Positions 4,163 to 41,460 of a stretch of DNA of 64,000 nt are shown here, in pieces (position 1 is the first letter of the stretch; each line of letters begins with the position of its first letter). Below the pieces are notes generated by a model that did no database searches, was not told the origin of the DNA, and saw only the letters and a list, made by a program, of their open reading frames with translations. Where the stretch lies: the sequence record MN871451.1. The stretch is one strand, 5' to 3'. A program made the translations under genes and the position numbers.

Positions 4163-4170
4163 GATATTAA

Positions 4171-4722: not shown

Positions 4723-4726
4723 CGTC

Positions 4727-4741
4727 TATATCACTCTAGTG
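4727..4741 (+). promoter_or_regulatory. putative early (virion RNAP) promoter
   Basis: TATATCAC-TCTA-GTG, a motif recurring at eight intergenic sites; resembles the phiKZ early consensus TATATTAC. Confidence 0.65.
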
Positions 4742-4837
4742 TAGAGACAACATCTCTACACTTTATATCTGAGAATCTAAAATTCTCTTATCTAACGTAA
4801 CGGGCCACTAACTGGTCACGAAGAAGGAAACTGTACG

Positions 4838-5644
4838 ATGATTATTTTACCAAATGAAGTCCAAAACACCAATGATACTGCTCTGGTGCACCCTTATACC
4901 CCAGAGTTCCGTATTAGGCTCGGCGAAGAACGTCCTGGGCTTAAAAATTATATTATGCCGGAACGAGATAATGAGAATTATAAAATTATCCCGGTGATTA
5001 CCCATGACAAAACAACCGATATGCGTTGGTTATCGATTGCGGAACGCGTGGATGACAATAACTTAATTATTCGTTTTATCAATCAGAAGCCCTATAGGCT
5101 TTACTCAAATATTGAAGGTCAAGAAGAGAAGTTCGTCTCTCAACTTGGGCGGGTTATGAATTGGTTCGGCGAATATATTTATTATTTTCTTGTAAACCGT
5201 CATGGCATTGGTTTCAAGAATGATAAGGTTATCGACGTTTATAATCAGTTACCGGTTAAGGTTGTTACTTTAAACCCATTCTTCGACGTAATTGCAGAAT
5301 TCTGTCACGAACGTAAAATAAATGTTCCTATTTTTGATGGAAGAAGATTCGAAGATGGGGTAGTCCTGAAACCAAAAATCTCTGTCGTCTTCTACGCGCT
5401 TTTTGCCGGAATTAAAACGAGGGTAATGTTAAAGGCGGGTGTTAGTTTTAACTCAGAAAACGGGCCTTCGTTTGGTTTTAATTCAAACCGAGTTTATACG
5501 ATTTCCCCTGCCGTAGGAGTGGATAATCTCGACCAGAATTATCGGTTACACATTGTTGAACCGGGGTTTGGTAGCAATGAACTTTCTTTACTGAATCAGG
5601 ACATCGTTAAAGCCTGGTTAAAAGCTGTGGTAGAGAGAATTTAA
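4838..5644 (+). CDS. hypothetical protein
   Basis: AAGGA RBS; 268 aa; first gene after the promoter motif. Confidence 0.75.
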   Translation: MIILPNEVQNTNDTALVHPYTPEFRIRLGEERPGLKNYIMPERDNENYKIIPVITHDKTTDMRWLSIAERVDDNNLIIRFINQKPYRLYSNIEGQEEKFVSQLGRVMNWFGEYIYYFLVNRHGIGFKNDKVIDVYNQLPVKVVTLNPFFDVIAEFCHERKINVPIFDGRRFEDGVVLKPKISVVFYALFAGIKTRVMLKAGVSFNSENGPSFGFNSNRVYTISPAVGVDNLDQNYRLHIVEPGFGSNELSLLNQDIVKAWLKAVVERI

Positions 5645-6943: not shown

Positions 6944-9250
6944 TTAAGCTATCTCATAATACCCCGCTACATCGTAGTAAATATAAGGCGCATTTCCAGC
7001 ACTAGTGTTCAGGTTTGCCGCGTTAAACGTGGTTGCCGAGACTCCGCTTAAAATTTTTAAGGTCGTATTTGTAATACTTGCCTTTAAATTCATTGCATCA
7101 GTCGCGCCGATAATGTTTTTAACCTCGATACTTGAAATCGAATTACCGCCACTTGCAACACTTACAGGTAAGTTACCTATAGTTATTGGACCAGAAGGGT
7201 AAGCCAACGCGCCGTTTTTAAATAGTTTTAGGGAGAAGAAGAAAATTTTACCTACAATCTTACCTGTACCTACAGCAGTTTCTAAATTAGTATATTCAAC
7301 CCCATTTACAAAAAGCGTTGGGATAAAACTTATTTTTCCAGCATAGACAAAATCCTCGTAAGAACCCAACGAACCATGAGGCAGTATCGCACGACTTTCA
7401 TTAATACTACCTATTATCCGATAACCGTTTTCATCAAAAATTGAAACTAAAAACGGATCTCTGGTTTGTTTTGCTCCTTTACTAGGATATGTAATAGAAA
7501 CCGAAAGCGGGTTATTCGTCCCTATCCCATTGGCAGAATATGCAGCTAGTTGACAGTTTGACGAGAGTACCACCTTGTCAGAATTGAACCCGTGTGCAAC
7601 TAAATAACCGATACCATAACCTTCGGGTCTATAAACATCTCGATTATCAACACCAAAGAAATTTCCAGTCGCAGAAGAACCCAAAGAACGTTGAATTAAA
7701 CCAACGCCCTCTAGATAAATATTATTGATAGAACAAAGATACGTCACTATCCCATTCTCGTTATTAAAGAAAAACGGTGCTCTATGAGGGCCTAAAACTT
7801 TGACTGATTTAATTTCGTAAGAAGCAGCTGCGCGACCGTAGCGAGAATAAACAGTAAGGACTCTCCCTACTACCCCACGATAAGGGCTCATTTTTGAAGC
7901 TGTCCCGCCGGTATTATTAGATAATCTCCCGCCTGCCGAAGTTTTTGCACTATTGGCGTTTTTGTAGAAATAAGTATCAAAATAAGTATCAACACTCTTA
8001 TGTCGATCACCGAAAGCTTGATCAACTTGCCCATAAACAACAAAATCAACTTTATAAAAATCGGTCCAACCTAATGACCATACGTCTGTCGCTGGATACG
8101 GCGGTAAATACGGGTTATTGTTACTATCATTTCTTTGCGTCCACCAACCACCGTGAATATCTCCTGTGTAGTTACCTGAGAAATGTAAGGTTCCGGCAGA
8201 ACAACGTTCAATGCCCTGAAATATACCGGCTATGGCGCAATTAGAAACTTTAATTTGTTCAAAGGATTGTTCTGCCGTTCCTTCTACTACTCTACCTATA
8301 AAGAAATTAGAAATATTGATATTAATTAAATTATATATTACAGTCCCTTGATATTTACTCCCAGCAGTAAAAAGAATACCAATCGGCTGATCGGTATCTA
8401 TAGGAGACGAATTTATTGACCAATTCCCTACAAATCCGTCTTTATTTACATCTGATCCGCGAATAGTTACTCTACCAGTTAATTTAAGGCACACTGGTTG
8501 CGTGTAAATAGTCTCCGGTGAGAGATTACTGTCCCCGTTATTTACCCATCCCGGATAAACAGTACCGTCATCTCCAGGAAGCGTTAAAGTAGTAGTTGTG
8601 CTGAAAATATTATAAAAGCCAGAAACAGTAATTTCACTCGCCGAGGCTTTTGATGCGTAATCAAATGCTTTTTGGACATAATTTGTCGAATCAAAAGTAG
8701 GTGATATTGAATTCGGGATTGCACCAAACATTGTTAAATCTAGTGATAATCTCTCTACGCGCTGCCAATAAAATCCGTTTCCTGCCGCGATTACACCACC
8801 GTCATCTGTAGCTGATCCGGTGAAACCCACAAATTCCCCTCCACCTAAAGCTTGACCTTCATGCCAACTGCGCAAATAAATTTTTTGCCCTGTTCTGAAA
8901 ACCGGCAGCGCGCGGAGAGCGGCAAAACTCCCTATTTCTTCAACAAAATTTACAGGTATATTCTGTTGAATTTTCCCGTAGGCGTCTAAAATCGTCACGC
9001 TGTAATGCGTTTCTACCGAAAGAGTAACTGTGTTACCTAAATTATCAACAGGTATCCCATTGCTGTTTAGAGCAATGGGTTGTGAAATAGTAGATACCGT
9101 ACCGTCTGTTTTCATTGCGGTTACTGTCAATTGATTACTTAGCACCGTGGGGTCAGTATTAATCTTGCCGATATACAAAGAGCCTGAGTTGGCGGCTCTC
9201 CCGCTATCGATCAATCTAAACTGATTGGATGGCATCGAAATAATATTCAT
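6944..9250 (-). CDS. tailspike / polysaccharide depolymerase with P22-like head-binding domain
   Basis: N-terminus GSLYIGKINTDP...QLTVTAM..DGTV..ISQPIALNSNG..HYSVTILDAYG resembles the P22 tailspike head-binding domain; then GGGEF..TDDGG..WQR, LTMFGA and an Asn/Gly/Ser-rich beta-helix-like body; visibly AT-rich. Confidence 0.8.
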   Translation of the reverse strand: MNIISMPSNQFRLIDSGRAANSGSLYIGKINTDPTVLSNQLTVTAMKTDGTVSTISQPIALNSNGIPVDNLGNTVTLSVETHYSVTILDAYGKIQQNIPVNFVEEIGSFAALRALPVFRTGQKIYLRSWHEGQALGGGEFVGFTGSATDDGGVIAAGNGFYWQRVERLSLDLTMFGAIPNSISPTFDSTNYVQKAFDYASKASASEITVSGFYNIFSTTTTLTLPGDDGTVYPGWVNNGDSNLSPETIYTQPVCLKLTGRVTIRGSDVNKDGFVGNWSINSSPIDTDQPIGILFTAGSKYQGTVIYNLININISNFFIGRVVEGTAEQSFEQIKVSNCAIAGIFQGIERCSAGTLHFSGNYTGDIHGGWWTQRNDSNNNPYLPPYPATDVWSLGWTDFYKVDFVVYGQVDQAFGDRHKSVDTYFDTYFYKNANSAKTSAGGRLSNNTGGTASKMSPYRGVVGRVLTVYSRYGRAAASYEIKSVKVLGPHRAPFFFNNENGIVTYLCSINNIYLEGVGLIQRSLGSSATGNFFGVDNRDVYRPEGYGIGYLVAHGFNSDKVVLSSNCQLAAYSANGIGTNNPLSVSITYPSKGAKQTRDPFLVSIFDENGYRIIGSINESRAILPHGSLGSYEDFVYAGKISFIPTLFVNGVEYTNLETAVGTGKIVGKIFFFSLKLFKNGALAYPSGPITIGNLPVSVASGGNSISSIEVKNIIGATDAMNLKASITNTTLKILSGVSATTFNAANLNTSAGNAPYIYYDVAGYYEIA

Positions 9251-9378
9251 GTAGTTGGCACTCCAAACCGTGTGGATATAGCTTGTTTCTTGTCACAAGA
9301 AACGGGTTAATGCGAAGTCATCACCTCTATTATCACGCCAATCTAAATTATTTTGAACCCGCTATTAAGGAAATCAAC

Positions 9379-9918
9379 ATGTTATTTTCAATGATTGTCG
9401 CGCACGATCTCGATTACATTATCGGACAAGATGATAAACTTGCTTGGAAATCAAAAGAAGACCTTTCATGGTTTGTAAGAAAAACCAAAAATAAAGCCAT
9501 CGTCATGGGGTCTACTACGGCTAAGGGTATTGGCCGGGCTTTACCCGGACGAGCCCATTATGTTCTGACCTCTGATCCCAGTCAGTTTGAAAACACCCCC
9601 GAACTCCTCGCGTATAGCTCATTTGAAGATATCGCTGTAGACGCCTCTAGAAAAGGCTACAACGAGATTGTTATCTGCGGAGGGGTAAGTATCTACAAAC
9701 AACTATTAGATCGGGTACAGAAGCTTTACGTGACGGAAATCCCTATTCGCTCCAAAGGGAATGTTCCGCTCGACATTGATCTTATCCAAGAACTCAGTAA
9801 ACTATTCTCTTATACTACCGTTCACCGTGGTTGGACCCTTGAGTCGCATGAATTCGGGGAAGACGAGGGATGTCGTTTCTCTACGTTCGTGAAAATACAG
9901 AATCCAATAACACGCTGA
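9379..9918 (+). CDS. folA: dihydrofolate reductase
   Basis: MIVAHD...IIGQDDKLAW..KEDLSWF...IVMG..T...IGRALPGR..ICGGVSIY; ATG 9379 after AAGGA. Confidence 0.92.
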   Translation: MLFSMIVAHDLDYIIGQDDKLAWKSKEDLSWFVRKTKNKAIVMGSTTAKGIGRALPGRAHYVLTSDPSQFENTPELLAYSSFEDIAVDASRKGYNEIVICGGVSIYKQLLDRVQKLYVTEIPIRSKGNVPLDIDLIQELSKLFSYTTVHRGWTLESHEFGEDEGCRFSTFVKIQNPITR

Positions 9919-9966
9919 TAATATTTATTTTGAAGATTAAGATTTAACACTTTCAAAGGGGTTACA

Positions 9967-10830
9967 ATGTTTAAAGTTACGTTTGATGACCAACCGGTCC
10001 TTTATGAAAATTTAACTTTCCCGGGTGGCGAGGAACATATCGCCATTAGTCGTCATGGTCTACCGCCTCATGATATCGGTGTTGTTAAAATAGAAGGAAG
10101 TATCAAATCCTCCACCGAGGCAGTGCGTCTACTGTTACTGGTCGATGCCATTCGTCGTATTGGGAAATACACGGCGAAAACAGAACTCCATTTAGTTGTG
10201 CCTTATTTCCCGTACGCGCGACAAGACCGTGTCTGTAATGCAGGCGAATCGTTTTCACTCGGCGTTTTTGCTGAACTGTTCAACAGCCTGAAAGCAGACC
10301 GAGTGTTGATACACGATCCTCACTCTAACGTTACCCCGGCGCTGATAAAAAACCTCGTCGTCCTGGAACAGTCCAAAATTGTCTACAATTTATTGGCTAA
10401 TTGGATTCGGGAAAATAACGTCGTGTTAGTTTCACCGGACGGCGGCGCGGCGAAGAAAACTGAAGAGTTGGCAAAACTACTCGGCGGGGTGCCTATCGTT
10501 TACGCAAACAAAAAGCGCGATACTAAAACCGGCAACATTCTCGACATTACGTTATTGGACAATGACAATATCGAAGGTCGTAATTTGTTGGTTGTCGACG
10601 ACATCTGCGATGGTGGGTGGACTTTCACTGAGCTGGCGAAAAAACTCAATACCCAAAACCCGAAATCGCTCAGTCTCTTCGTGACCCATGGAATTTTTTC
10701 CAAGGGCCTGGGTGAACTCTCTATCGCTTTTGATCAGATTTTCTCAACCAACGTTTGGTGGGAAAATATCACTGACGACGGGTTACCAACCCAATCTTAT
10801 TTAACTGCTAAAGATGGACGTGTGAAATGA
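9967..10830 (+). CDS. ribose-phosphate pyrophosphokinase-like protein (candidate Adps)
   Basis: TFPGGE, PYFPYARQDR, DPHS, VSPDGGA and LVVDDICDGGWTF (PRTase loop) motifs. Confidence 0.9.
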   Translation: MFKVTFDDQPVLYENLTFPGGEEHIAISRHGLPPHDIGVVKIEGSIKSSTEAVRLLLLVDAIRRIGKYTAKTELHLVVPYFPYARQDRVCNAGESFSLGVFAELFNSLKADRVLIHDPHSNVTPALIKNLVVLEQSKIVYNLLANWIRENNVVLVSPDGGAAKKTEELAKLLGGVPIVYANKKRDTKTGNILDITLLDNDNIEGRNLLVVDDICDGGWTFTELAKKLNTQNPKSLSLFVTHGIFSKGLGELSIAFDQIFSTNVWWENITDDGLPTQSYLTAKDGRVK

Positions 10831-12608
10831 CCAACCCTTTACTGAAAGACCCAAAGTTCTATACTGAAGATCCGCTGGTTTTCCTGCTGTGCGACGCCTA
10901 CAAAACGGGGCACATCAATCAACAACCTCTGGGCACTGACAGCTTCTTTGAAAACCTGACGGCGCGTAGTCATACGTACTTCAATACGCCTCTGGACTTC
11001 GACGGTTCGGTGTTCATGGGAATGCAGCGCCTGGTTCTGCGTTGGTTGGTGGGAAGTTTCGATAACTTCTTTAAAGCGCCGTTCAACGAATCGGAGGCAG
11101 AATACCTTCAGTATATGGATGGTGTTCTGGGTAAAGGTGTGGTGAAATCCGCTCACCTGAAAGCACTTCACGAGCTGGGTTATCTCCCACTGGAAATCCG
11201 TGCGGTACCGGAAGGCTCACTCGTCCCTATTCGTGTTCCATTCCTGACGATTGAAAACACAGTGGATGGCTTCGGGTGGCTGACGGGTTATTTCGAAGAC
11301 CTCTGGAGTAACGAACTCTGGAAGCCATGTGTGCTGGCAACGAAAGCGTTGCACTTCCGTCGAGTGTTAGAGCAGTACGCTAACGAAACGGGTGCGGCAA
11401 AAGCCTTTATCGACTACCAATCTCATAACTTCGCACTGCGCGGTATGTCGGGTATGTTCGATGATGCCAACAGCTCAGTCGGTCAGCTGATCTACTTCAA
11501 AGGGAGCGATAGCTTCCCTTCGGTCTGGACAGCGAATCGCTTCTATAACCCAGAAGGCGATATGCCGATTTCTGAAATCGCCGGGAGTGTGCCCGCTACA
11601 GAGCACAGTGTAACCTGTTTGAACATCGCAGTCTATGTCGAGCAGTTACAAGCTACTCCGGGGTACAAGAATGCGACTGAAGCGGAACTGCTGTCGAAAG
11701 CGGAAGAACTTTTCCAACGTCGACTGATCACTGAAGTTTATCCGTCTGGCGTTTTCAGCTTCGTCAGCGATACTAACGACTTCTTCGATACCATCACCAC
11801 CAAAGCCATCGCTAATAAAGATGCGATTATGGCGCGTGACGGTAAACTGGTCTATCGCCCGGATAGCGGTAATCCGTATCACATCCTCTGCGGCTATACT
11901 TGGGATGGCGATAATCACCTTTCTGCTGGTATTTATCCCGACCCTCGAATTGGTGGAAAAACGCTCTACTCCGAAATAGGTCGAGAAAAGACGGAAGAGT
12001 TCCTTCGTCGTTTTTCTATTGAAAACGGATACGAGTGCTATTGTATCGACAACGTTTTCTATTCGACTGAAAGCGGTAAACCTATTTCTTTGGAAGAGAA
12101 AAAAGGGGCCGTGCAAATCCTTTTTGAAATCTTCGGCGGAACAACCAATGCTGCGGGTTACAAAGAACTGGATTCTCACGTCGGTTTGATTTACGGGGAT
12201 GCAATCACATTGACTCGCATGACTCAGATCCTTTCTCGTTTGAAAGCGAACGGGTTCTGTAGTTCCAACGTGGTCTTTGGTGTGGGCAGTTTCGAATTCC
12301 AGTATGTTACCCGTGACACCCTGGGCATCGCCATGAAGGCGACTGCTGGGAAGGTTAACAGTAAACATTACTCTATCGCGAAAAACCCGAAAACCGACGA
12401 TGGTACTAAGAAATCGGCGAAAGGTTATCTGATCGTTGCGAAGGGCGAGAACGGAAAACTCGAGCTACGTGATAACCTGACCCGTGAAGAGTATGAAGCG
12501 CTTCGCGGTAGTGAGGTTGACGCGATGCGGACTGTGTACCTGAACGGCGACGTGAAAGTACTGGAAAGTCTTCGTACTATTCGTCAACGTGCGGCGCAGT
12601 GGTTGTAA
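10827..12608 (+). CDS. nicotinamide phosphoribosyltransferase-like protein (candidate Namat)
   Basis: DAYKTGH, HNFALRG, SVPATEHSV, FVSDT, YRPDSG, IYGDAIT, FGVGS and RDTLGIAMKAT..K.PKTDDGTKKSAKG motifs; overlaps the Prs-like stop. Confidence 0.92.
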   Translation: MTNPLLKDPKFYTEDPLVFLLCDAYKTGHINQQPLGTDSFFENLTARSHTYFNTPLDFDGSVFMGMQRLVLRWLVGSFDNFFKAPFNESEAEYLQYMDGVLGKGVVKSAHLKALHELGYLPLEIRAVPEGSLVPIRVPFLTIENTVDGFGWLTGYFEDLWSNELWKPCVLATKALHFRRVLEQYANETGAAKAFIDYQSHNFALRGMSGMFDDANSSVGQLIYFKGSDSFPSVWTANRFYNPEGDMPISEIAGSVPATEHSVTCLNIAVYVEQLQATPGYKNATEAELLSKAEELFQRRLITEVYPSGVFSFVSDTNDFFDTITTKAIANKDAIMARDGKLVYRPDSGNPYHILCGYTWDGDNHLSAGIYPDPRIGGKTLYSEIGREKTEEFLRRFSIENGYECYCIDNVFYSTESGKPISLEEKKGAVQILFEIFGGTTNAAGYKELDSHVGLIYGDAITLTRMTQILSRLKANGFCSSNVVFGVGSFEFQYVTRDTLGIAMKATAGKVNSKHYSIAKNPKTDDGTKKSAKGYLIVAKGENGKLELRDNLTREEYEALRGSEVDAMRTVYLNGDVKVLESLRTIRQRAAQWL

Positions 12609-16343: not shown

Positions 16344-17246
16344 ATGTTTCGAGACTTTATTTACGACAATGAATGGCATCCTGCGGGGGTAGAAGGGATT
16401 AACGTCACGGATGGAATGTTTTTGGGTGAGTATAACGGAGTGAGTGTCTATTATAACGACTACCGCTTTACGTTATTCAAGACATTGGAAACAGGGGTAT
16501 TGTTACGGTCCTATTTTTATTTGACAACCTTAATGTTTTATCAGAAAATATCCAAGGATGGTTTCCCTGAATGGTTCTCTGGAATTCTGGATATAGCGGT
16601 GGCCAAACTCTGGCATATCTTTGATGTGCCATTGTTGATAGACCTTTATGCGGACGGCGAGTTCCCTTCTAAAAAGGAAATTACTGAAGTTTATCCTGAA
16701 GGATATTGTTTAGACAACTACGAATTTAGAAGGGCTCAACGAGATTTATTTATTGAGCTCTATGGGTTCGTCCCTTTCAGTAAAGAAACGGAGGTTCAAT
16801 TAGTTAATATTTTAAAAGGGAAGAAAGTCTGTGAAGTGGGCGCTGGTAAAGGTTTGTTATCAAAGAAACTTTTTGATAATGATATCAGCATTATTGCGGT
16901 AGATAATTGCGAAGGGAACTATTCTTCTCAGTGGTGGACTGATGAATTACCAGAATGGTTTTTGAAAGCATCCGTAGACGATATCGCAATCAGTCATTAC
17001 GATGTGATCATCTCGGTATGGGCACCACTTGGCTCGCCTATGTTGACGAACACCGCTAAACGAATGCACGCCGGGCAACTTCTTTTCTGCCAAGGTGAAT
17101 ATCGGGGTTGTACGGCAGATGACGATTTCTTTCAGTTAGTCGATGAGGAATTTGAAGAGGATGAAGAACTAACGAAACTTCTTCGTGAGGGAAACGTCTC
17201 TTTTGAAGGCATTCACGATGACTGGTATGTTTACCGTAAACTCTAG
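16344..17246 (+). CDS. class I SAM-dependent methyltransferase-like protein
   Basis: VCEVGAGKG glycine loop, IIAVD, and a later GEYRGCTADDDFF motif; substrate unknown. Confidence 0.7.
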   Translation: MFRDFIYDNEWHPAGVEGINVTDGMFLGEYNGVSVYYNDYRFTLFKTLETGVLLRSYFYLTTLMFYQKISKDGFPEWFSGILDIAVAKLWHIFDVPLLIDLYADGEFPSKKEITEVYPEGYCLDNYEFRRAQRDLFIELYGFVPFSKETEVQLVNILKGKKVCEVGAGKGLLSKKLFDNDISIIAVDNCEGNYSSQWWTDELPEWFLKASVDDIAISHYDVIISVWAPLGSPMLTNTAKRMHAGQLLFCQGEYRGCTADDDFFQLVDEEFEEDEELTKLLREGNVSFEGIHDDWYVYRKL

Positions 17247-17259
17247 CAAGAAGATCGCT

Positions 17260-17373
17260 ATGGAACTCAACGAAAAAAATCGTAATATGGTAATTGAAAA
17301 AGCGAAAAAAGGAATCTCCTTCTCTGTCTGGCGAAACAAATTTGGTATCTCGGGGGTAATGTTAAGTGAATAA
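17260..17373 (+). CDS. small hypothetical protein
   Basis: ATG 17260; 37 aa; fills the gap and overlaps the next start. Confidence 0.45.
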   Translation: MELNEKNRNMVIEKAKKGISFSVWRNKFGISGVMLSE

Positions 17374-17665
17374 ACTTTTTCTTGTTCTGATACTGTTGTT
17401 CTCGCACGGGGCGTTAGCTGACACTATTACGGTGTGGGATGACCCCGATAATAACTATGCGGGGCGCTTCGAGAAGAAGTCTATGGATGATGGTTATTTA
17501 CGGATTATCGTCGATCACGCGACTGGTTGTGAGTACTTCTACGTAGAAGGGAGAAGCATTGCGCCTGTCTTAGGGGGAAGTTATGCTGCCCGTGATCCGT
17601 ATTGCCCTTCTGAGAACAAGTACACTCAGCAGACAGACAACGGCACGAAAGCGTATCGCAAATAA
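17366..17665 (+). CDS. secreted protein (DUF6440-like IIVDHATGCEY motif)
   Basis: Signal peptide MNKLFLVLILLFSHGALA. Confidence 0.7.
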   Translation: MNKLFLVLILLFSHGALADTITVWDDPDNNYAGRFEKKSMDDGYLRIIVDHATGCEYFYVEGRSIAPVLGGSYAARDPYCPSENKYTQQTDNGTKAYRK

Positions 17666-19182: not shown

Positions 19183-19650
19183 ATGTCAGAGTTGATACGG
19201 AATTTAGAGTTAATGAATTTCAATGCGCCCAGTGATTTCCGTAATGCTGATCAATACAATATTACACTTGATCGACTGGAATCCCAAATGCAGAAGATCC
19301 TGAACTTTGGCAGTATTGGTTACGTCACGTTCGCACAAGCCGATGATTGGGAAAAGTCCTTTTCGCGGAATCAAAGTGCAGGGTATCTAGTAGGATACGA
19401 GATCGTTAACAATTGTTCCAGTGGCGCCATCTGGCTTTATGCTGACATTGCGCTTTCCCCCGAGGCGATCGGATTCAGAAATCTTTTTCCAGACCTTTCT
19501 GGTTTTGCTATGCGTAGTCAGTCCCTTATCATTAATTCTGACTACGGTAGAATCGCCCAGATAGAATCAATCGAAGCGTTTGACTTCACCTTTACCAAAG
19601 ACAGTTCAATAAGGAACGAACCCGTTGAAAAACACAAAAGACGTCGCTAA
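19183..19650 (+). CDS. hypothetical protein
   Basis: 155 aa, in operon. Confidence 0.65.
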   Translation: MSELIRNLELMNFNAPSDFRNADQYNITLDRLESQMQKILNFGSIGYVTFAQADDWEKSFSRNQSAGYLVGYEIVNNCSSGAIWLYADIALSPEAIGFRNLFPDLSGFAMRSQSLIINSDYGRIAQIESIEAFDFTFTKDSSIRNEPVEKHKRRR

Positions 19651-19789
19651 AATGTTAGGCATCTCCCAATCCGCTGTTCGTATTCGCGTCAGTAAAGGGA
19701 AACTCCCTGCTCCCGATAAACGAGAGGGGAAAGAATTATTCTGGAAACTCGAAACCATTACCGGGGCTGTTGATGGCATACGTCCTTAA
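19625..19789 (+). CDS. AlpA/excisionase-like helix-turn-helix protein (54 aa, not in ORF track)
   Basis: TTG 19625, 9 nt after AAGGA; translates to MKNTKDVAKMLGISQSAVRIRVSKGKLPAPDKREGKELFWKLETITGAVDGIRP. Confidence 0.75.
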   Translation: MKNTKDVAKMLGISQSAVRIRVSKGKLPAPDKREGKELFWKLETITGAVDGIRP

Positions 19790-19967
19790 TACCTTACTTT
19801 GGTTACTGGTCTTATTGAGTGGTAACCTGATTTTCGCTTTTCTGTGGATTGCAATACGGGACGGTCTGAAAAAGAAAACGATGGCAGTTCTACAGTCGTT
19901 AGTCTGTGTCGTTGTCTTCGGCTGGTTGCATTATCTAAGCTTAATTACGTTTATCAAGGATTTCTAG
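19773..19967 (+). CDS. small two-TM membrane protein
   Basis: Two hydrophobic helices separated by RDGLKKK. Confidence 0.65.
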   Translation: MAYVLNTLLWLLVLLSGNLIFAFLWIAIRDGLKKKTMAVLQSLVCVVVFGWLHYLSLITFIKDF

Positions 19968-20381
19968 ATGACCCCCGTTAAACAGCTACTTATTCAGTTC
20001 TTAAAATCTCAGCATACCTTATCGATTATCGCTGAGACGTCGGATGCAGCGGAGCTTTTTCTGAAAGCGGTCGCCCCTGAATTGAAAGAGGAAGTCATCC
20101 TTTTCATTCACAGCGAGTACGGCAATTTAAACGCGAAAGACTTGATGGAGAAAATCAAGTCAGCGAAAAAGGACGCGGAACTTTCCGGGAAACGTATCGT
20201 CTTTGTCGCTGAAAAGAAAATGCCGGTTTACACGTTTGAAGCGTCGTGCGTGATCGAAGTTGAACAGATCGACTTAGGCGACGCACTCTTTAACTTAGGA
20301 AAAATCGCTTTCGATATCACCTTCGTTAAATGTCGCGGTTACACGGTAGATGGCTTTGAAGGCGTCACGTTAGTAGAATAA
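19968..20381 (+). CDS. hypothetical protein
   Basis: AAGGA RBS; 137 aa. Confidence 0.7.
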   Translation: MTPVKQLLIQFLKSQHTLSIIAETSDAAELFLKAVAPELKEEVILFIHSEYGNLNAKDLMEKIKSAKKDAELSGKRIVFVAEKKMPVYTFEASCVIEVEQIDLGDALFNLGKIAFDITFVKCRGYTVDGFEGVTLVE

Positions 20382-20438
20382 TCCTCTCCCTTCCTGCATT
20401 GGCAGGAAGGGAGAGGCTCTATGTCGTATCTTTCTTTT

Positions 20439-21029
20439 TTAGTACATCAAATTACCGTCCAGGAAGCGCGCTACACGTTTCCCTGAACTTTTCCTACCGT
20501 CAGTATGCTTTTCCACTGAACGGCCGTCACGGTGCTCTACTAGCGATTTGATAGGGTAATAGACAGGACCGTCCCACGCACTCCCGATAGCAAAGTCTGC
20601 CGGTTTTCGGTTATCAATTCCCTTTAGGATCTTTTCAATAGAACCCGGGGCGGGCGAATAACAGACACCGTGAATCAATTGATTTAACCGGATCGCTTCG
20701 CGCCCTAACCGTTTAGCGTTAAGAATTGAGTGCGTTACTAATTCCTGGTACTGCGGTGGTCGGCTCGTCCCTAGATAAAAACTGACGAATTGTTCCGGGT
20801 AAACAGTAAACCACTTTTCTGCTTTTTCAATAAAGCCCTCAACCGGAATAGCATCGTCTTCCATGATAACAACGCGTTCATCCTGTTGGACTGCCCATTC
20901 CAAAGCCTTGATGTGGTTAGCCAACGCCCCTGTCCCTACTGTGTCAAGAAACACTTCGCATGGGAGCACACTCGTAAGCTTTTCAATGACTATCTTCCTT
21001 GACACATGTCCTACTACCGCAATACGCAT
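20439..21029 (-). CDS. GT-A fold glycosyltransferase (GT25-like)
   Basis: VVIMEDDAIP, VSFYLGTSRP, LIHGVC, KPADFAI and SLVEHRD motifs; GAGG RBS. Confidence 0.8.
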   Translation of the reverse strand: MRIAVVGHVSRKIVIEKLTSVLPCEVFLDTVGTGALANHIKALEWAVQQDERVVIMEDDAIPVEGFIEKAEKWFTVYPEQFVSFYLGTSRPPQYQELVTHSILNAKRLGREAIRLNQLIHGVCYSPAPGSIEKILKGIDNRKPADFAIGSAWDGPVYYPIKSLVEHRDGRSVEKHTDGRKSSGKRVARFLDGNLMY

Positions 21030-21040
21030 AATAGTTACCT

Positions 21041-22498
21041 CTACTTGTGCTGCCAGAAAGCGATGTCGTTACCGTGACCGTTTCCTTTAAAGACGGTGTT
21101 GACAATCGGACCGTGTACCAGGTTCTCACCAAACTTGAAGGCTTCGATCCCGAACATTACCATATCTGTCGCTGATTCAGGGCCGGTTTCTTCTCGCCAG
21201 AAAATCTCTGATTTCATTTTCCAGACTTGCGCGATCATCCCGTGTGCCACTTTCATGACATCTTCACGTGAACCACCAATAATCCCAGCGTTGACAACCT
21301 GCTGATCTTTATTTTCCTGAATAAACTTTTTCAGGTATTTCTGGTGATTGACTTTATCAAACCACGGGTTACTGTAAGTGGTGTGTTCGTTACCGACGTA
21401 CAGTTTACCGGGCTCCATACTTTCCCATGGTTCTCTCAACATGATAACGTCAGTTCCGTCTGTGCACCAGACCTGTTCAATATCCGGGTTATCGCGGAGG
21501 TATTGGTAGATGTGCAGCCAGCGTAAGAAGTAAGGGGAAAGATTGTTGACTTCGGGAACCTTAATCAGATTCACACCCGTCATCGCTGAGAGTTGATCAG
21601 CAAAGACAATTTTCTCTGCGCCCTTGATACTGTTCGCCCACGCTTGTAATAAAGCGGGGGTCGCCTGCATGTGCTGATTACGCTGCGGGTCTACACAACC
21701 AGTGAGAAGACAAGTCATTACCACCCGACGTGGTTTACGGTACGGAGCGAAACCAGTATAACGCGCTCTCCGCCTGGCGCTATAAATCTTGACGTTACGT
21801 TCGACCTGTTGCTGGCGATCAGCTGGCGGGACTGAACGCGTCACTTCTTCATGTTCATCGAGTGAATAAATGAGTTTGTTACTGCCAACGACGTCGCCGA
21901 AAGGAAATGTTGTTAACCCCGCATTGTGAATTCTTAATGCTAAGTCAACGTGTTCATACATCCCGCGTTGGTAAATAGGATCAAAACCACCGACTTTATC
22001 AATTGCGGATTTATGGTAGTACAACATTACACCACGCTGACCCGAAAGCGCGAAGTGTTTACCGTCATTGAAGACCTCGATAGTATCGTTGATTTTCCTT
22101 TTACCGGCGAGGTCTTTAAATTGATAACCCAGATGCGGTTCAGGGGATTCCATATACGGCACCCACCAATTCTCTGCGATAGGGAAGGCGTCGTCGTCCC
22201 AGAGGTAAAGATGCTCACAGCCGGCGTCAATCAAAAGCTGAAGCGAAGTATTCTTTACCGCAACAATCCCTTCGCTTTTCTCGTGACGGTGCACCTGAGC
22301 CCATTCAGGACCTTTAACTGGGGTATCAGACCCATCGTCGACAATGTAAACCACGGCATTAGGTGGTAGAAACTTTTCGTGTTGCTCTAACGTTCGTTTA
22401 AGGACGTCGTGTCGGTTACGGGTGGAGATCGCTATCCCAATTTTCTTCTCTGCTTGTTCTTCTGGTATATAACGTTTACCATCAATGATTACGTCCAT
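21041..22498 (-). CDS. two-domain glycosyltransferase (GT2 plus a second GT-A-like domain)
   Basis: IAISTRNR, IVDDGS, LYLWDDDAFP, KVGGFD and EHVDLALR in the N-half; WCTDGTDV and NAGIIGG in the C-half. Confidence 0.88.
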   Translation of the reverse strand: MDVIIDGKRYIPEEQAEKKIGIAISTRNRHDVLKRTLEQHEKFLPPNAVVYIVDDGSDTPVKGPEWAQVHRHEKSEGIVAVKNTSLQLLIDAGCEHLYLWDDDAFPIAENWWVPYMESPEPHLGYQFKDLAGKRKINDTIEVFNDGKHFALSGQRGVMLYYHKSAIDKVGGFDPIYQRGMYEHVDLALRIHNAGLTTFPFGDVVGSNKLIYSLDEHEEVTRSVPPADRQQQVERNVKIYSARRRARYTGFAPYRKPRRVVMTCLLTGCVDPQRNQHMQATPALLQAWANSIKGAEKIVFADQLSAMTGVNLIKVPEVNNLSPYFLRWLHIYQYLRDNPDIEQVWCTDGTDVIMLREPWESMEPGKLYVGNEHTTYSNPWFDKVNHQKYLKKFIQENKDQQVVNAGIIGGSREDVMKVAHGMIAQVWKMKSEIFWREETGPESATDMVMFGIEAFKFGENLVHGPIVNTVFKGNGHGNDIAFWQHK

Positions 22499-22564
22499 AG
22501 AGTATTCAACCTGGTTATGTTCAGTGAAAAAGTCATAAGATTAATCTCCAATCTTTTTCATGTA

Positions 22565-22579
22565 TATATTGCCCGAGTG
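22565..22579 (+). promoter_or_regulatory. putative early promoter
   Basis: TGTA-TATATTGC-CCGA-GTG, followed by a hairpin and the AACTAAACC leader. Confidence 0.65.
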
Positions 22580-22638
22580 ATAAAGGAAAAGAATAACCCT
22601 TTTATCATACTTTTAACTAAACCAATAAGGAATATATC

Positions 22639-23271
22639 ATGACCACTTTCACTATTACTGTTTTCGCTAAAGACGCTAACTTTGATTTGACCCCGGACAT
22701 GCTGTCCGAGAATTTCGCCACATTCACGCCGCGCTTCGATTTTGAAAATTCTATCCCGGAAACGGCAGATTTAATCGTGGAGACTCGTATGAGTACGGGC
22801 GACCGTTTTTGGATGTACTGCGAAAATGGAGAGGCGTTTTCCACGATGTGCGACGAGCCAGAATTCCTGGCCAACTGGCCGTACAAACGCGAATACCTCG
22901 ACAGCACGATTCTTACTCCTGATGAACTCGCAGACTTCGAAGAAGATATGGATATTCTTTCTATCGTCTACGGACTAGAAGAGGTTATCGTTAACGTTAA
23001 GCGTTATCGCGAACAGAACCCTGTGAAAGTTATGCCGGGCGACTTCAGCTTTAATCCGGAAACGGATATCTTCATTGACGAAGTGGCTAAAACACAAAGC
23101 GGGGAACGTGAGCATTATCACATGATCATTCGTGACAATGTTATCTACCTCGATAAAACATTGTCGATTGTTAACATGACCGATTATGAACCGATCACTG
23201 TTACAACGATCAAATTCAAACACGCTGAAGATATTAAATTCAGTGCGAACATGGCGCCGTTCTTTAACTAA
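22639..23271 (+). CDS. acidic hypothetical protein
   Basis: AAGGA RBS; 210 aa; Asp/Glu-rich. Confidence 0.75.
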   Translation: MTTFTITVFAKDANFDLTPDMLSENFATFTPRFDFENSIPETADLIVETRMSTGDRFWMYCENGEAFSTMCDEPEFLANWPYKREYLDSTILTPDELADFEEDMDILSIVYGLEEVIVNVKRYREQNPVKVMPGDFSFNPETDIFIDEVAKTQSGEREHYHMIIRDNVIYLDKTLSIVNMTDYEPITVTTIKFKHAEDIKFSANMAPFFN

Positions 23272-23338
23272 TCAAGCACTTACCTGGCAGGGGAGTTCCC
23301 CTACCATTTATACAACTAAACTTATAGAGGAAAGTCAA

Positions 23339-25315: not shown

Positions 25316-25420
25316 AGATTCCGTTGACTTTTTATGAACGTACAACTGTGGTTTATTTTGCATACCAAGAAAAAGCTCACTATCCGGTGAGCCTCTTTAA
25401 ACTCTGCTAAGGTGGTATCG

Positions 25421-26233
25421 ATGGGACGTCAAAAGAGTAACGCTAAATTGGATCGCGAAGTTCGTCGTGAGTCTCGCCGTAAACTCAATCAGCAACGCTC
25501 GCTATCGAATGAAGAAACAGCGGAACTTTTTCAGTTTGATAACAGAGGGAACAGCTTCCCTGTTACTCATATTGGGATGGAGAAAGAAAAGCGTGATCGT
25601 AGCCCGATAGAAGCCCGCAACGTCAATCAGGGTCTCTATATGGATGCATTACAGAGTCGGGATTTGATCGTCGCTACAGGATCTGCAGGGTCAGGTAAAA
25701 CGCTTTTGGCCACAGTCTATGCGGTCGATCAGCTCAGCGAGAAAAGCGTTGAAAAAATCGTTGTGACCCGGCCGATGTTGACAGCGGAAGAAGAGATGGG
25801 TTTCCTTCCGGGAACGCAATACGAGAAGTTCCTGCCCTACTTCCGTCCGGTCTATGATATTCTCCGTCGTCGGATGGGACCAAGCTTCCTTCAGTATTGT
25901 CTTCGTCCTGAGATCGAGAAGATCGAAGTTGCACCATTCAGTTTTATGCGCGGACGAACCTTTGACGATGCAGTGATTATTCTTGACGAAGCCCAGAACG
26001 TTACTGTCAACCAGATGCGTCTCTTCCTGACCCGTGTTGGTGACAATTCCACAGTCATCATTAATGGCGACTTAAACCAGTGCGATCTTCCTAAAGGCGT
26101 CAAGTCGGGGTTAGCAGACCTACTTGAACGGATAGAGCGTAAACAGTTAGATATCCCGGTGATTAACTTTACCGATGCTGACTGTGTACGTTCCCCGATT
26201 TGCCAAACCGCCTTAGCGATCTACGCAGAATGA
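25421..26233 (+). CDS. phoH: PhoH-family ATPase (enterobacterial PhoH type)
   Basis: GSAGSGKT Walker A, VTRP, GFLPG, RGRTF, ILDEAQN and NGD..QCDL motifs; MGRQK N-terminus as in E. coli PhoH. Confidence 0.93.
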   Translation: MGRQKSNAKLDREVRRESRRKLNQQRSLSNEETAELFQFDNRGNSFPVTHIGMEKEKRDRSPIEARNVNQGLYMDALQSRDLIVATGSAGSGKTLLATVYAVDQLSEKSVEKIVVTRPMLTAEEEMGFLPGTQYEKFLPYFRPVYDILRRRMGPSFLQYCLRPEIEKIEVAPFSFMRGRTFDDAVIILDEAQNVTVNQMRLFLTRVGDNSTVIINGDLNQCDLPKGVKSGLADLLERIERKQLDIPVINFTDADCVRSPICQTALAIYAE

Positions 26234-26287: not shown

Positions 26288-26692
26288 ATGTTTAAAAGTA
26301 AACGCAATGACCCCGCGGTATTTGTCAAGGATAATACACTTGGAGATATTTTCTTATACTTACGCAGTGGAGATTTCGACGGGGGTTGTAAGTTGCATTA
26401 TTTGTTTTCTTTGGTGGAAAAGAAAGTAAAAGCAATACCTGACGACTTGTATCAATTAACGTACGGACCAGAAAGAAATTTACGTTTAGCAGATGTTAAA
26501 GACATTGATCCTCATGCCTATTATTTTTGCATCAAGACCCAGCGCCTTTTCCAAGGGTTTAATCGCGTAATGACTAACAATTTCCCTGTCCAATGGTCTG
26601 TGGTAGGGGCTTACGTTTCGTTAGTACGTGAAGCAGTGACGATCCCTGAACATGAATTTGTTTCCGAGTTTAAAAAGGTAGTAAGAGAATGA
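26288..26692 (+). CDS. hypothetical protein
   Basis: AAGGAG RBS; 134 aa. Confidence 0.7.
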   Translation: MFKSKRNDPAVFVKDNTLGDIFLYLRSGDFDGGCKLHYLFSLVEKKVKAIPDDLYQLTYGPERNLRLADVKDIDPHAYYFCIKTQRLFQGFNRVMTNNFPVQWSVVGAYVSLVREAVTIPEHEFVSEFKKVVRE

Positions 26693-26949
26693 ACGTATAC
26701 AAAAAGGTGCATGTCCTTTATTTGCCGGGGAATAAAGAACAGAACAAACTCGAATGGTCTTTCCCTTACTCCGATGACGATGTTAAGGTAGTAGAGGATT
26801 TTCACGCTTTAGATTTAAGTGCGTTAAGTGAACAAGAAAAACATCGTATCACTCAACTAGTAATTGAACTTCCTCGTTACGGGTTAGTGCGCACTGATTC
26901 TGCGGATCCTGTGTTGGGTTTGGTAGTGGTGGCATTAAAGAGAAAATAA
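26689..26949 (+). CDS. hypothetical protein
   Basis: ATGA overlap; 86 aa. Confidence 0.65.
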   Translation: MNVYKKVHVLYLPGNKEQNKLEWSFPYSDDDVKVVEDFHALDLSALSEQEKHRITQLVIELPRYGLVRTDSADPVLGLVVVALKRK

Positions 26950-26983: not shown

Positions 26984-29221
26984 TTATTCATCTACTAGTA
27001 CGCCTATTCTAATTTCTTTAATGTAGTTATTGTTAACATTATTTGCCATAATGACCAATAACTCTAGTGCATTATCCATTCCGTTTGAAGATCCACGCAT
27101 AGTTACGTAACCGTTAGCGTAAGCCTCAGCGGAAGAGTTTGCTGTGTTAGAAGAAGGCTGGCAAACTAACGTTGTGTCTTGCGGATTCATTGTATTGTCG
27201 ACAGCTGATATTTTATTGTTCGTCAATTCCATGAGCATCGGATTACCGATGTTACCATCCCAGGATGGTAATCTACGAAGAGTCATGCTAAATGAAGTTG
27301 GTCCATTAGCATTTCCTGCAAGGCTATTCTTATTAAAAGTTAAAAATGCGCGGACATCTACAACTCCGTTAACGTATGACGGGATAGGTATTCGCATGAT
27401 AACATCATTTACGCCCGTCGCGATAAACCTTCCGTCGTATCTTAATAAATCGGCTGCCGGGGTAACAAGATACGCCGTAGGGGTAAAATACAAATAACCG
27501 ATTTTATACCCGCGAATTGTATTGTTTTGGAAGAAACCAAATGGGGTTTGTGTTTCTCGATAGAAAGGTTTTTGCGGTTTAAATTTGAGTACATTAAATT
27601 GGGCATTTGAGGTCCTAAAGTAAACGTCGTATATTACGTTGTTCACTTTCAAATCACTGAATATCCCGTACTTACCTGCAATACTGATTCCGTTATCCGA
27701 ATTATTCACCTCGATGTCGCTGAAAATATTCGGTTTACTTGCATCGTTGAAACTGGCATCGGAATAGAAAGTACTCAGTCCGTTCTTCGCGTTATTGACA
27801 TAGAGGCCACGAACAATACAACCTTTTGTATTATTAATTAACACCCCTTCAGAGGACGCTGAGCGACCGAGGTTATTAATCTGAATGTTCGTAAACGTTA
27901 CATCCTCGCAGAGATTCGTCGCTATCCCTGAACCATTTAATGTACCGTCTTTTAATGGTTTATACTGAATCGCCGTATCTACTGTGACATCAGTAGAGTT
28001 TGCAACAAAAACAAGACTATAGAATGTTTTATCTTGGTTAGGATTTAAACAGTACAGGTTATGGATGTTAACGCGGTAGCAAGACGGGGTTTCAGGGATA
28101 GTATCAGAGCCTACGTTAACTATCTCTGTCCACCCTTCGCCATAAATGTTTTTGATCTCTATATCCATTGCGTTGTTTAAGTTTATCCCATAACCACCGT
28201 TCAGGTTACTCCCTGTATAAACAGCAACTAAATATAAATTGGAAATAGAGCAGTTTGTGCACTGCGCCAAGTTTTGATTATCGCGGAGATACTGTTTCTG
28301 TCCAGGGTTAACGAAGGTGTTATCTGCAACATTTCCGCCGACGACTGTTCCGGATCGCCATACCGACATTCCTTTTACACGGTTAGCTTCGCGGGAACTT
28401 CCCATTACAAACCCACCGCGGCCTTTAGCCGATAACAAAGGGTTCTCAAAAATGACCTTACTTCCCATACCTTGTCCAATCATTTTCGTCTTATGGAAAA
28501 AGAAAACCGGGAAAGTAATCCGAAAGGCTACATCGGGAGATGGTACGTTTATAATGCCGCCACCGAATTGATAGGTACCGTACGTGGCCCCTTGGAAGGC
28601 GAAGTAATCGTCAGTAACACCGTCTCCTTTAGCGCCAAAATCATAGACTGAAAAAATACCTTTATCCGGTACTCGTTGCCAGACCCATTGATCGTCGTAT
28701 CTAACATGCGCACCATTGTCGTTTTCTACCGTACTGTTACGAATAGCTTTGAAGTTACCACCCCCTCGGCTGTTCCCTGAATAATAACCCCTCAAAAAAA
28801 TAACCTGTCCTTCAAAGGAGGGTTGAACAGAACTGATCTCTGAAAAGTTATCGACTTGAATTTGAATGTGTTTTAATAACGCGGGAATATAAATAATTTT
28901 CTTAGTTCCGCTTTTACCGATGACCGCATTCGCGCCAATGTTAGTTCGGACGTATTCGTTGACTGATAATTTGTTACTGTCGACATAAACGTAGAAGAGT
29001 TGGTTTTCTACCGTTGCAGCAATCCCCTCCTCCACTGTCTCAAAGGCATGGTCAAAATCAAAAAGATCCCGAACCTGGCTCAATGTGATTTTGTTCGTTG
29101 CCAAAGTACCGCTAGATAACGTCAAACTTAGCGGTAACTCTCCTGCCATATTCCCGCTAGTCAAACTGTTTAATTCACTGATCTTATTCCCGAAGTCACT
29201 CATTACCATTACCTTTCTCAT
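26984..29221 (-). CDS. tailspike / depolymerase (pectate-lyase-like beta-helix)
   Basis: GGGNF..DNG..WQR module; SVYDFGAKGDGVTDDYFAFQ beta-helix start; Asn-rich rungs. The true start may be an in-frame ATG near 29203 (MSDFGNKISELN). Confidence 0.85.
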   Translation of the reverse strand: MRKVMVMSDFGNKISELNSLTSGNMAGELPLSLTLSSGTLATNKITLSQVRDLFDFDHAFETVEEGIAATVENQLFYVYVDSNKLSVNEYVRTNIGANAVIGKSGTKKIIYIPALLKHIQIQVDNFSEISSVQPSFEGQVIFLRGYYSGNSRGGGNFKAIRNSTVENDNGAHVRYDDQWVWQRVPDKGIFSVYDFGAKGDGVTDDYFAFQGATYGTYQFGGGIINVPSPDVAFRITFPVFFFHKTKMIGQGMGSKVIFENPLLSAKGRGGFVMGSSREANRVKGMSVWRSGTVVGGNVADNTFVNPGQKQYLRDNQNLAQCTNCSISNLYLVAVYTGSNLNGGYGINLNNAMDIEIKNIYGEGWTEIVNVGSDTIPETPSCYRVNIHNLYCLNPNQDKTFYSLVFVANSTDVTVDTAIQYKPLKDGTLNGSGIATNLCEDVTFTNIQINNLGRSASSEGVLINNTKGCIVRGLYVNNAKNGLSTFYSDASFNDASKPNIFSDIEVNNSDNGISIAGKYGIFSDLKVNNVIYDVYFRTSNAQFNVLKFKPQKPFYRETQTPFGFFQNNTIRGYKIGYLYFTPTAYLVTPAADLLRYDGRFIATGVNDVIMRIPIPSYVNGVVDVRAFLTFNKNSLAGNANGPTSFSMTLRRLPSWDGNIGNPMLMELTNNKISAVDNTMNPQDTTLVCQPSSNTANSSAEAYANGYVTMRGSSNGMDNALELLVIMANNVNNNYIKEIRIGVLVDE

Positions 29222-41403: not shown

Positions 41404-41445
41404 CAGACAATTGGAGATGAACCCATCTCCAATTTTTTTAACATC

Positions 41446-41460
41446 TATATAGCTACAGTG
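41446..41460 (+). promoter_or_regulatory. putative early promoter
   Basis: TATATAGC-TACA-GTG, followed by a hairpin and AACTAAACC. Confidence 0.55.

Follow-up and report, generated by a model that had tools for sequence, protein, structure and literature searches.

Introduction

Glycosylated virions have been reported for the mycobacteriophages Che8, Corndog and Myrna. According to papers citing the original study, capsid and tail-tube subunits carry the glycans at their C-termini, the particles are shielded by them from antibodies, and the essential glycosylation enzymes are gp110 in Che8 and gp38 in Corndog (PMC12363180, PMC12619734, PMC13445384). Phage Rita is also stated to be glycosylated in PMC11256854; the Rita genome announcement does not mention glycans. 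Here we describe two adjacent genes encoding a large and a small glycosyltransferase (GT-L and GT-S) in a 64,000-nucleotide stretch of sequence record MN871451.1 (henceforth the window). This GT pair is homologous to enzymes of glycosylated mycobacteriophages, and its best explanation is that it O-glycosylates the phage's own virion proteins, a reading that we consider probable on the comparative evidence presented below. This kind of system is known from mycobacteriophages; no paper in the literature searched was found to describe its occurrence in a jumbo phage of a Gram-negative host, very probably a nucleus-forming one, and in very many enterobacterial prophages, or the C-terminal tag that goes with it.

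The source genome (302,439 bp) is that of Serratia phage KpYy_2_45, whose host is Klebsiella pneumoniae. Region 19900-23300 of the window is 100% identical to this phage and 96.5-98% identical to nine other Klebsiella jumbo phage records including the annotated KpLz-2_45 (genus Siatvirus), and FBKp24 (Maaswegvirus) and Centimanus are remoter relatives. The lineage is phiKZ-like and very probably nucleus-forming, because KpLz-2_45 has genes for several split beta-type RNA polymerase subunits and for the PhuZ tubulin, and nucleus-shell and tubulin proteins have been reported for FBKp24 (bioRxiv 10.1101/2021.03.02.433402).

Homology of the GT pair to mycobacteriophage enzymes

The genes and domains of the pair are the following (positions in the window).

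21041-22498, minus strand: GT-L, soluble glycosyltransferase of 485 amino acids with two predicted GT-A domains (open reading frame, PHROG, homology, AlphaFold, Foldseek)
21737-22498, minus strand: GT-L N-terminal GT2-like GT-A domain, residues 1-254, with D54-D55 and the DxD motif D101-D102-D103 (PDB profile, phrog_2456)
21044-21736, minus strand: GT-L C-terminal GT-A-like domain, residues 255-485 (conservation, tandem fold alignment)
20439-21029, minus strand: GT-S, predicted minimal GT-A glycosyltransferase of 196 amino acids with E57-D58-D59 (open reading frame, PHROG, homology, AlphaFold, Foldseek)

The two open reading frames (ORFs), separated by 11 nt, lie exactly where an earlier note on this DNA, made from the sequence alone, had placed two co-oriented minus-strand genes. 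GT-L could be aligned end to end, over 485 residues, with gp101 of the Cluster F phage Rita (45% identity, E 7e-144) and over 96% of its length with Myrna gp234 (37% identity). GT-S is related to Rita gp103 (29% identity, E 8e-19) and to Myrna gp238, and the BFVD model of Ardmore gp87, a protein 96% identical to Rita gp103, superimposed on GT-S with a template modelling (TM) score of 0.85 in Foldseek. A tblastn search with GT-L detected 604 phage records, 571 of which belong to Mycobacterium or Mycolicibacterium phages; 383 of the 604 records had a match spanning 80% or more of the query. When Rita gp103 was used as query in the reciprocal tblastn search, the Klebsiella, Escherichia and Cronobacter phages of the GT-S set came back among the matches listed. 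The likeness to mycobacteriophage enzymes, which the earlier note had drawn from a few motifs, is thus one of full-length homology for both proteins.

Gene order is conserved as well. Rita and Myrna have in common the arrangement large GT, small ORF (in some cases), small GT; in the siphoviruses an HNH gene comes next, and then the genome ends. The order of the two linked genes is the same in Rita, Myrna, the lambdoid phage mEp390, the metagenomic jumbo relatives L178 and L179 and the independent lineage L188. From the shared genus and gene order, Rita gp103 is presumably the equivalent of Che8 gp110.

All motifs named in the earlier note were found: VDDGSD (residue 53), WDDD (100) and TDGTD (346) in GT-L, and EDDA (57), VSFYLG (82), LIHGV (118), KPADFAI (142) and SLVEH (162) in GT-S. 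The acidic residues of GT-L are kept in 92-100% of 92 diverse homologs. In the same homologs the N-domain motifs are conserved to 92-99% and the C-domain residues D270, D347-x-x-D350, E371, N403 and H484 to 92-100%. E57, D58 and D59 of GT-S did not vary among 37 homologs.

The pair was predicted to comprise three GT-A-like domains, and on this point AlphaFold and Foldseek agreed with the earlier reading. The AlphaFold models had mean confidence values (pLDDT) of 95.9 for GT-L and 91.8 for GT-S. GT-L matched phrog_1579 over its full length (E 1e-203), with residues 18-254 covered by phrog_2456, and GT-S matched phrog_854 (E 4.5e-47). A profile of the GT-L N-domain detected chondroitin synthase (2.7e-6) and heparosan synthase (1.9e-5) in the PDB; the C-domain had no Pfam match and no PDB sequence match. 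The Foldseek alignments of GT-L with enzymes of tandem GT-A build, namely heparosan synthase 2 (PmHS2, E 1.7e-12), K4 chondroitin polymerase (K4CP) and LH3/COLGALT1, spanned approximately 490 columns; single-domain GT6 transferases also matched. The structural neighbours of GT-S were Mimivirus R655 and R699, the glycosyltransferase domains of LH3/COLGALT1, STIV A197, POMGnT1 and ppGalNAc-T. The TM scores of 0.5-0.65 obtained with giant-virus GT25 proteins and COLGALT1 indicate a likeness of fold only. The possibility that the three domains are duplicates of one another was rejected (hhalign probabilities below 1%); the GT-L C-domain has no profile relation to the GT-L N-domain or to GT-S.

With the single proteins as queries, PDB searches gave noise only, and Pfam and NCBIfam gave only sub-threshold matches (GT2, TAGT, GT25 and MftF); Glycos_transf_2 (GT2), for example, scored 14.5 bits on GT-L against a cutoff of 23.3.

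Some of these matches bear on other possible substrates. If the pair modified host envelope glycans (lipopolysaccharide (LPS), capsule or enterobacterial common antigen) for superinfection exclusion or release, as the glycosyltransferases of seroconverting prophages do, one could understand the weak match of GT-S to the LPS family GT25 (Glyco_transf_25, 13.5 bits, E 0.066, cutoff 24), the resemblance of the GT-L fold to capsular polysaccharide synthases, and the combination of a heavily capsulated host with a phage that has many depolymerases. However, GT-L and GT-S have no hydrophobic segment (highest Kyte-Doolittle 19-residue averages 1.03 and 1.28), so that both should be soluble, and neither belongs to the membrane-embedded GtrA/GtrB/GtrC-like type of seroconversion enzyme. 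There are no transmembrane segments, no GtrA/GtrB-like partners and no Gtr matches in Pfam. Moreover, the jumbo phage is lytic, the lambdoid relatives carry the pair in the late operon by the terminase and not near the attachment site, and mycobacteriophages with virions reported to be glycosylated possess this module too. Because hydrophobic segments and Gtr partners are absent and the site in temperate relatives is a late operon, envelope modification is improbable.

Glycosylation of the phage's DNA bases, comparable to that by T4 glucosyltransferases or TET-associated glycosyltransferases, appears less probable still. It would agree with the faint TAGT match of GT-L (13.2 bits, E 0.083) and with the name 'glucosyltransferase' given to GT-S in the annotation of relatives, but the TAGT cutoff, 27.5 bits, is far from reached. 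The one gene of the thymidylate synthase family that was found encodes a true ThyA (TIGR03284 score 189.6, cutoff 108.35), and no TET or hydroxymethylase gene is located beside the island or annotated in the fetched stretches of KpLz-2_45. The same pair is present in HK97-like and Cluster F phages, and we know of no hydroxymethyl-pyrimidine pathway in those that carry it. In addition, the phage nucleus would wall the DNA off from cytoplasmic enzymes. The earlier note had kept both DNA and the host surface as alternatives; the low family scores and the absence of partner genes and of hydrophobic segments disfavour them.

The ThyA just mentioned, KpLz-2_45 gp045 (L008:23994-25373, outside the window), is a 459-residue thymidylate synthase with two ThyA-matching stretches split by about 140 residues in the manner of an insertion. 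It was considered as a possible hydroxymethylase and rejected, being a ThyA with an insertion.

Distribution of the GT pair

Outside the jumbo lineage the closest relatives of the pair (53-55% identity) are not in actinophages but in enterobacterial lambdoid phages, among them mEp390, HK542, ENT39118, ENT47670, ECP1, FSL SP-016 and AsXd-1. Pairs with 53-59% identity occur in lambdoid phages and in very many prophages of Citrobacter, Salmonella, Enterobacter, Klebsiella and E. coli, and an exhaustive search yielded 231 representative clusters at E <1e-30. In mEp390 the pair follows the lysis cassette and precedes the HNH and terminase genes, which is late-operon territory. No publication was found on the function of the lambdoid pair.

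The two genes move as a unit among siphoviruses and myoviruses of Actinobacteria, enterobacterial lambdoid phages and prophages, and the jumbo lineage. In siphoviruses they have the lysis genes on one side and HNH/terminase on the other, or else follow the capsid gene directly. A GT-L homolog (46% identity) and an adjoining ORF of 213 residues also occur, with rIIB, RNA ligase and PhoH genes as neighbours, in a large T4-like metagenomic phage present in more than 100 collection blocks (L183/L184:10001-12099); the spread of the module thus extends to other kinds of phage.

The GC content of the island, 47.4% against 42-43% in its flanks, fits acquisition from the enterobacterial lambdoid pool, which is the probable donor of the jumbo phage pair. 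The same GC difference, together with the fact that the closest non-jumbo relatives are prophage genes of Enterobacterales, might be taken to mean that the island came in recently and is carried along without a function. This is hardly credible: both ORFs are intact and contain all catalytic motifs, and they have stayed at one locus even in relatives with no more than 62% identity, which implies long-term purifying selection.

Island layout and candidate promoter elements

Signals recognized around the GT pair were these.

22499-22638: divergent intergenic region of 140 nt with candidate promoter elements of the GT island (sequence)
22548-22569, minus strand: ATATA..AAA..ATTGG block, candidate promoter element, kept in the relatives L178 and L179
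22534-22537, minus strand: TATG, 36 nt before the GT-L ATG
20383-20416: perfect 15-bp GC-rich hairpin, a likely bidirectional terminator closing the island (terminator scan, sequence)

As the earlier note had described, the pair forms a minus-strand island amid plus-strand genes, opposite accessory genes. The hairpin separates GT-S from the convergent gene 19968-20381 (plus strand). Further minus-strand islands in the window contain two tailspike/depolymerase genes, the gene of an internal-head-like protein, that of a DUF7338 protein, and a block encoding sheath, a virion protein and baseplate hub.

The TATG that had been noticed upstream of the island is present on the minus strand, one base away from the position given for it (22535-22538). 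TATG was found within 60 nt upstream of 5/7 minus-strand islands and of approximately 4/32 plus-strand genes (intergenic gap of at least 50 nt). In phiKZ, late promoters contain TATG with the G at +1; the motif is insufficient, and some middle promoters share it (PMC4666361). As a 4-mer, TATG alone is poor evidence. A longer pattern, ATATA-N5-8-AAA-N1-5-TTGG, occurred at three sites in the window (0.17 expected), of which one precedes GT-L and another the tailspike gene 26984-29221.

In L178 and L179, whose GT-L is 62-65% identical, the pair occupies the same locus, again as an opposite-strand island, and the tailspikes are the only other genes on its strand. GT-L and the tailspikes of these relatives are preceded by an ATATA..ATTGG-type block and by (C/T)TATGA 32-39 nt before the start. 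Co-regulation of the GT island with the tailspike genes is suggested by the strand and upstream elements common to them, also in relatives as distant as these. The earlier description of the island as late-looking holds for the promoter-like elements shared with tailspike islands; that it is expressed late we infer from these elements.

In the third ATATA..AAA..ATTGG copy (41429-41450, minus strand) the portion TTGGAGAT forms part of the inverted repeat TTGGAGATgggttcATCTCCAA, and no obvious minus-strand gene lies downstream. The 13-mer GCAATATATACAT of the GT-L upstream region is shared with just one other intergenic region. The two divergent intergenic regions 22560-22629 and 44371-44435, upstream of GT-L, of the DUF7338 ORF 43767-44336 (minus strand) and of their plus-strand neighbours, both contain GCAATATATACAT and TAACTAAACCAATAAG, in identical copies spaced by about 40 nt. 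These copies may represent a repeated bidirectional promoter or 5' untranslated region cassette.

According to the annotation of relatives, the accessory genes around the island encode dihydrofolate reductase, phosphoribosyl pyrophosphate synthetase, nicotinamide phosphoribosyltransferase, PhoH and a methyltransferase-like protein. PnuC and NadR, encoded elsewhere in the relatives' genomes, make up with the island-flanking accessory genes a set for salvage of nicotinamide adenine dinucleotide (NAD).

9283-12608: accessory genes near the GT island (relatives' annotation)
16344-17246: accessory genes near the GT island (relatives' annotation)
25412-26233: accessory genes near the GT island (relatives' annotation)

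A candidate C-terminal acceptor tag in GT-positive phages

Since papers citing the mycobacteriophage work place the glycans at C-termini, the C-termini of proteins encoded near the GT pair were examined. The capsid and major tail proteins of Rita and the capsid and tube proteins of mEp390 end with Gly-Ser (-GS). In a sample of 80 GT-positive viral loci comprising 2041 ORFs, -GS was the commonest C-terminal dipeptide besides the query's own (72/2041). It was carried by capsids (at least three unrelated families), major tail proteins (likewise three or more families) and the head-tail adaptor Ad1. Proteins of the capsid, tube and Ad1 families ended in -GS or -TS with three exceptions in about 100, and a terminal Ser was never seen in the portal, terminase or protease of these loci. 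The independent lineage L188, in which GT-L is 33% identical, has a Phage_capsid_4 capsid ending in ..PSGS, and the product of its next head gene ends in ..EGGS. In the loci L050:8693-9640 and L057:8627-9610 GT-L is located directly downstream of a -GS major head gene of the phrog_247 type; the usual site is before the terminase.

In the myovirus Myrna capsid, sheath and tube have no tag. The sole -GS protein in the stretches examined (record positions 1-145000 of 164602) was gp98 (L177:2376-2921, ..LAGGS), a capsid cement protein (Phage_cement_3, PF23968, E 2.5e-99) encoded directly upstream of the capsid gene. On this pattern, we propose that the -[G/T]-Ser end is an acceptor tag for glycosylation. 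No report of such a tag was found in the searchable literature; the primary mycobacteriophage paper might describe it.

As a control, 58 loci were collected with the HK97-type capsid protein as seed and with enough upstream sequence; the sample is phylogenetically clustered. GT-L was present in 54/58 loci, and the capsid ended in -SGS or -AGS in 56/58. Three -SGS loci and the single -SAD locus lacked the GT. The GT-negative set (n=9) consisted of cos-ended contigs, namely HK97, HK75, HK633, HK544, mEpX1 and HK446, all missing from the GT-L matches, and three others. In these phages the capsid ended in -SGS in 7/9, Ad1 in -EEGS in 9/9 and the tube in -TIS or -VTP in 9/9. Capsid proteins of the GT-negative HK97 and HK75 and of the GT-positive mEp390 and HK542, with the C-terminal peptide ..FSSGS, are more than 94% identical. 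The capsids of mEpX1 and HK446 end in -SAD. Four GT-negative phages have tagged capsid and Ad1 genes at the following positions.

L128 (HK97), about 4028-5185 and 5219-5545: capsid and Ad1 genes
L132 (HK75), about 4028-5185 and 5219-5545: capsid and Ad1 genes
L124 (HK633), about 4028-5185 and 5219-5545: capsid and Ad1 genes
L125 (HK544), about 4028-5185 and 5219-5545: capsid and Ad1 genes

A strict link between tag and GT pair was rejected by this control. GT presence predicts the tag and the tag does not predict the GTs, because GT-negative phages of the HK97 group retain -SGS and -EEGS. The tag must then serve some other purpose, unless the enzymes were lost from HK97-type heads in recent times; the HK97 capsid may be the bearer of a leftover glycosylation tag.

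Candidate acceptors in the jumbo phage

None of the ORFs in the window has a -GS end. In KpLz-2_45, which was scanned in separate pieces, -GS ends were found in 7 of 368 ORFs (about 1.4 expected): gp026, gp060, gp092, gp095, gp100, gp154 and gp308. One of the seven, gp154, is a DUF7941 protein of 178 residues that falls into PHROG families of 'virion structural protein' and is encoded beside paralogs. It is 100% identical at 112728-113261 of MN871451.1, outside the window. Its counterparts in FBKp24 and Centimanus (79% identity) differ by a two-residue indel just before the retained -GS (..DGFGS vs ..DGFSAGS). Homology between gp154 and Myrna gp98 was considered and rejected (BLASTP E 2.9).

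The small ORFs gp092, gp095 and gp100 come after tailspike genes. In FBKp24 the counterparts have the ends -SGS (gp092, no detectable similarity), -GQS (gp095, 51% identity) and -EGS (gp100, 99% identity). Small ORFs of 64-97 residues after tailspike/depolymerase genes nearly all end in -GS in both phages.

L009:12601-12810, 17213-17506 and 26507-26728: small post-tailspike ORFs of KpLz-2_45
L182:2758-2952, 7347-7640 and 19574-19795: small post-tailspike ORFs of FBKp24

We predict that gp154 and the small tail-fibre-cluster ORFs are acceptors of the jumbo phage enzymes.

Several observations weigh against glycosylation of the virion. The jumbo phage capsid (..VVPAS; ..VTPAS in FBKp24), sheath (..LANG) and tube candidate (..GVAI) lack the tag. 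The gp154 protein belongs to a paralog family of the phiKZ type assigned by PHROGs to 'head and packaging', and may therefore be internal. Retention of -SGS capsids and -EEGS Ad1 proteins by the GT-negative phages HK97, HK75, HK633 and HK544 makes the tag unspecific. A preprint describing the FBKp24 structure by cryo-electron microscopy (cryo-EM) at 4.3 A does not mention glycans; capsid and tail maps of FBKp24 are deposited (EMD-13862 and companions). As for expression, the timing of the GT island is read from short motifs, of which TATG is insufficient even in phiKZ, and the extended late-promoter motif YCTATGAM is not enriched over the window (4 found, 6.7 expected).

The untagged capsid, sheath and tube are also what one would expect if the enzymes acted on targets in the infected cell other than the virion: a small molecule, host proteins, or non-structural proteins of the phage, such as those of the nucleus shell or those related to defence. 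Of the seven -GS ORFs three (gp026, gp060 and gp308) have no virion annotation, and the island is surrounded by accessory genes (NAD salvage, PhoH, thymidine kinase). We regard this as the strongest rival explanation, yet an unlikely one. The enzyme pair is conserved with virion-glycosylating phages, strand and upstream elements of the island are common with tailspike genes, and of the tag carriers at least four belong to the virion or the tail-fibre cluster.

Virion glycosylation, which the earlier note had suggested, therefore gains from the homology to enzymes of glycosylated phages and from the common gene order, and loses from the absence of the tag from capsid, sheath and tube candidate.

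Discussion

Under the preferred explanation, the GT pair would be a cytoplasmic O-glycosylation module with three active sites that decorates the phage's own virion proteins. GT-S, which corresponds to the small enzyme reported as essential in mycobacteriophages, would prime by transferring a sugar from a host uridine diphosphate (UDP)-sugar to a serine that forms the free C-terminus of certain virion proteins or lies close to it. GT-L, which is built like bifunctional polysaccharide synthases, would extend this primer with two further sugar types or with a short repeating chain. The island would have its own promoter and be transcribed together with the tailspike and other structural islands. 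As the enzymes appear soluble and the lineage nucleus-forming, virion proteins rather than DNA should be within their reach, and the two would meet in the cytoplasm, outside the phage nucleus, when the virion proteins are freshly made. By analogy with mycobacteriophages, the resulting glycan coat could mask the particle surface, e.g. from antibodies.

A wider proposal, which we put forward as tentative and rather doubtful, is that one mobile O-glycosylation system spans phages of Actinobacteria and Proteobacteria, reads a minimal -[G/T]-Ser-COOH tag that arose convergently in unrelated capsid, tail-tube, adaptor, cement and other virion proteins, and has been redirected in the jumbo phage to DUF7941 and tail-fibre-associated acceptors. 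If this were true, hundreds of enterobacterial prophages and the Klebsiella jumbo lineage would make glycan-coated virions, the HK97 capsid would bear a leftover tag without the enzymes, and the tag would be a simple sequence predictor of modified virion proteins.

Nothing relevant to virion glycosylation in Gram-negative phages was found in the literature searched, and the primary mycobacteriophage glycosylation paper reportedly saw little evidence for it in other phages. The present results place the same enzyme pair in phages of Klebsiella, E. coli, Salmonella, Enterobacter and Citrobacter. For therapy a glycan coat would be of consequence, because Klebsiella jumbo phages are therapy candidates and the coat would affect immunogenicity, pharmacokinetics and the antibodies' view of the particle. 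It would matter also for the building of cryo-EM models, in which C-terminal density has perhaps been left unexplained. The question can be answered by mass spectrometry of cultured phages, including natural GT-positive and GT-negative relatives (mEp390 or HK542 vs HK97).

Comparison with known systems

Several known glycosyltransferases resemble the pair in fold. The predicted structure of GT-L aligns over both domains with Pasteurella heparosan synthase 2 and E. coli K4 chondroitin polymerase, and GT-S resembles the GT-A domains of LH3, COLGALT1 and GT25 enzymes. With identities of 10-15%, TM scores of 0.3-0.6 and unrelated substrates, these tandem GT-A synthases and collagen glycosyltransferases are alike in fold and not members of the same family.

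Chlorovirus PBCV-1 (A64R) and giant viruses provide a functional parallel, in that cytoplasmic GT-A enzymes encoded by the virus glycosylate its own capsid without host machinery. A64R was a weak structural match to GT-S (rank 48); there is no sequence homology, and the host is eukaryotic. The glycan linkages and acceptor sites of PBCV-1 differ from those of the proposed phage system.

The nearest non-jumbo relatives are the pairs of lambdoid, Hendrixvirinae-like phages (mEp390, HK542, ENT39118, ECP1), whose hosts belong to the same order as that of the jumbo phage. Unlike the jumbo phage, these are temperate siphoviruses in which the pair lies between lysis cassette and terminase with HNH genes interleaved, and their capsid, Ad1 adaptor and tube all have -GS ends, in contrast to the jumbo capsid and tube.

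The closest described system is the module of the Cluster F phages Che8 and Rita and of Myrna. For this module glycosylated virions have been reported, whereas the jumbo phage system is known here from its genes. The jumbo phage differs in being a 300 kb, very probably nucleus-forming myovirus of a Gram-negative host, in having its island amid accessory genes and not, as in Cluster F, at the genome end beside HNH and terminase, in lacking the small intervening ORF, and in its untagged capsid and tube. In both, the two genes are homologous, adjacent and co-oriented and encode soluble enzymes, the large one has the same two-domain structure, and the pair is accompanied by virion proteins with -GS ends.

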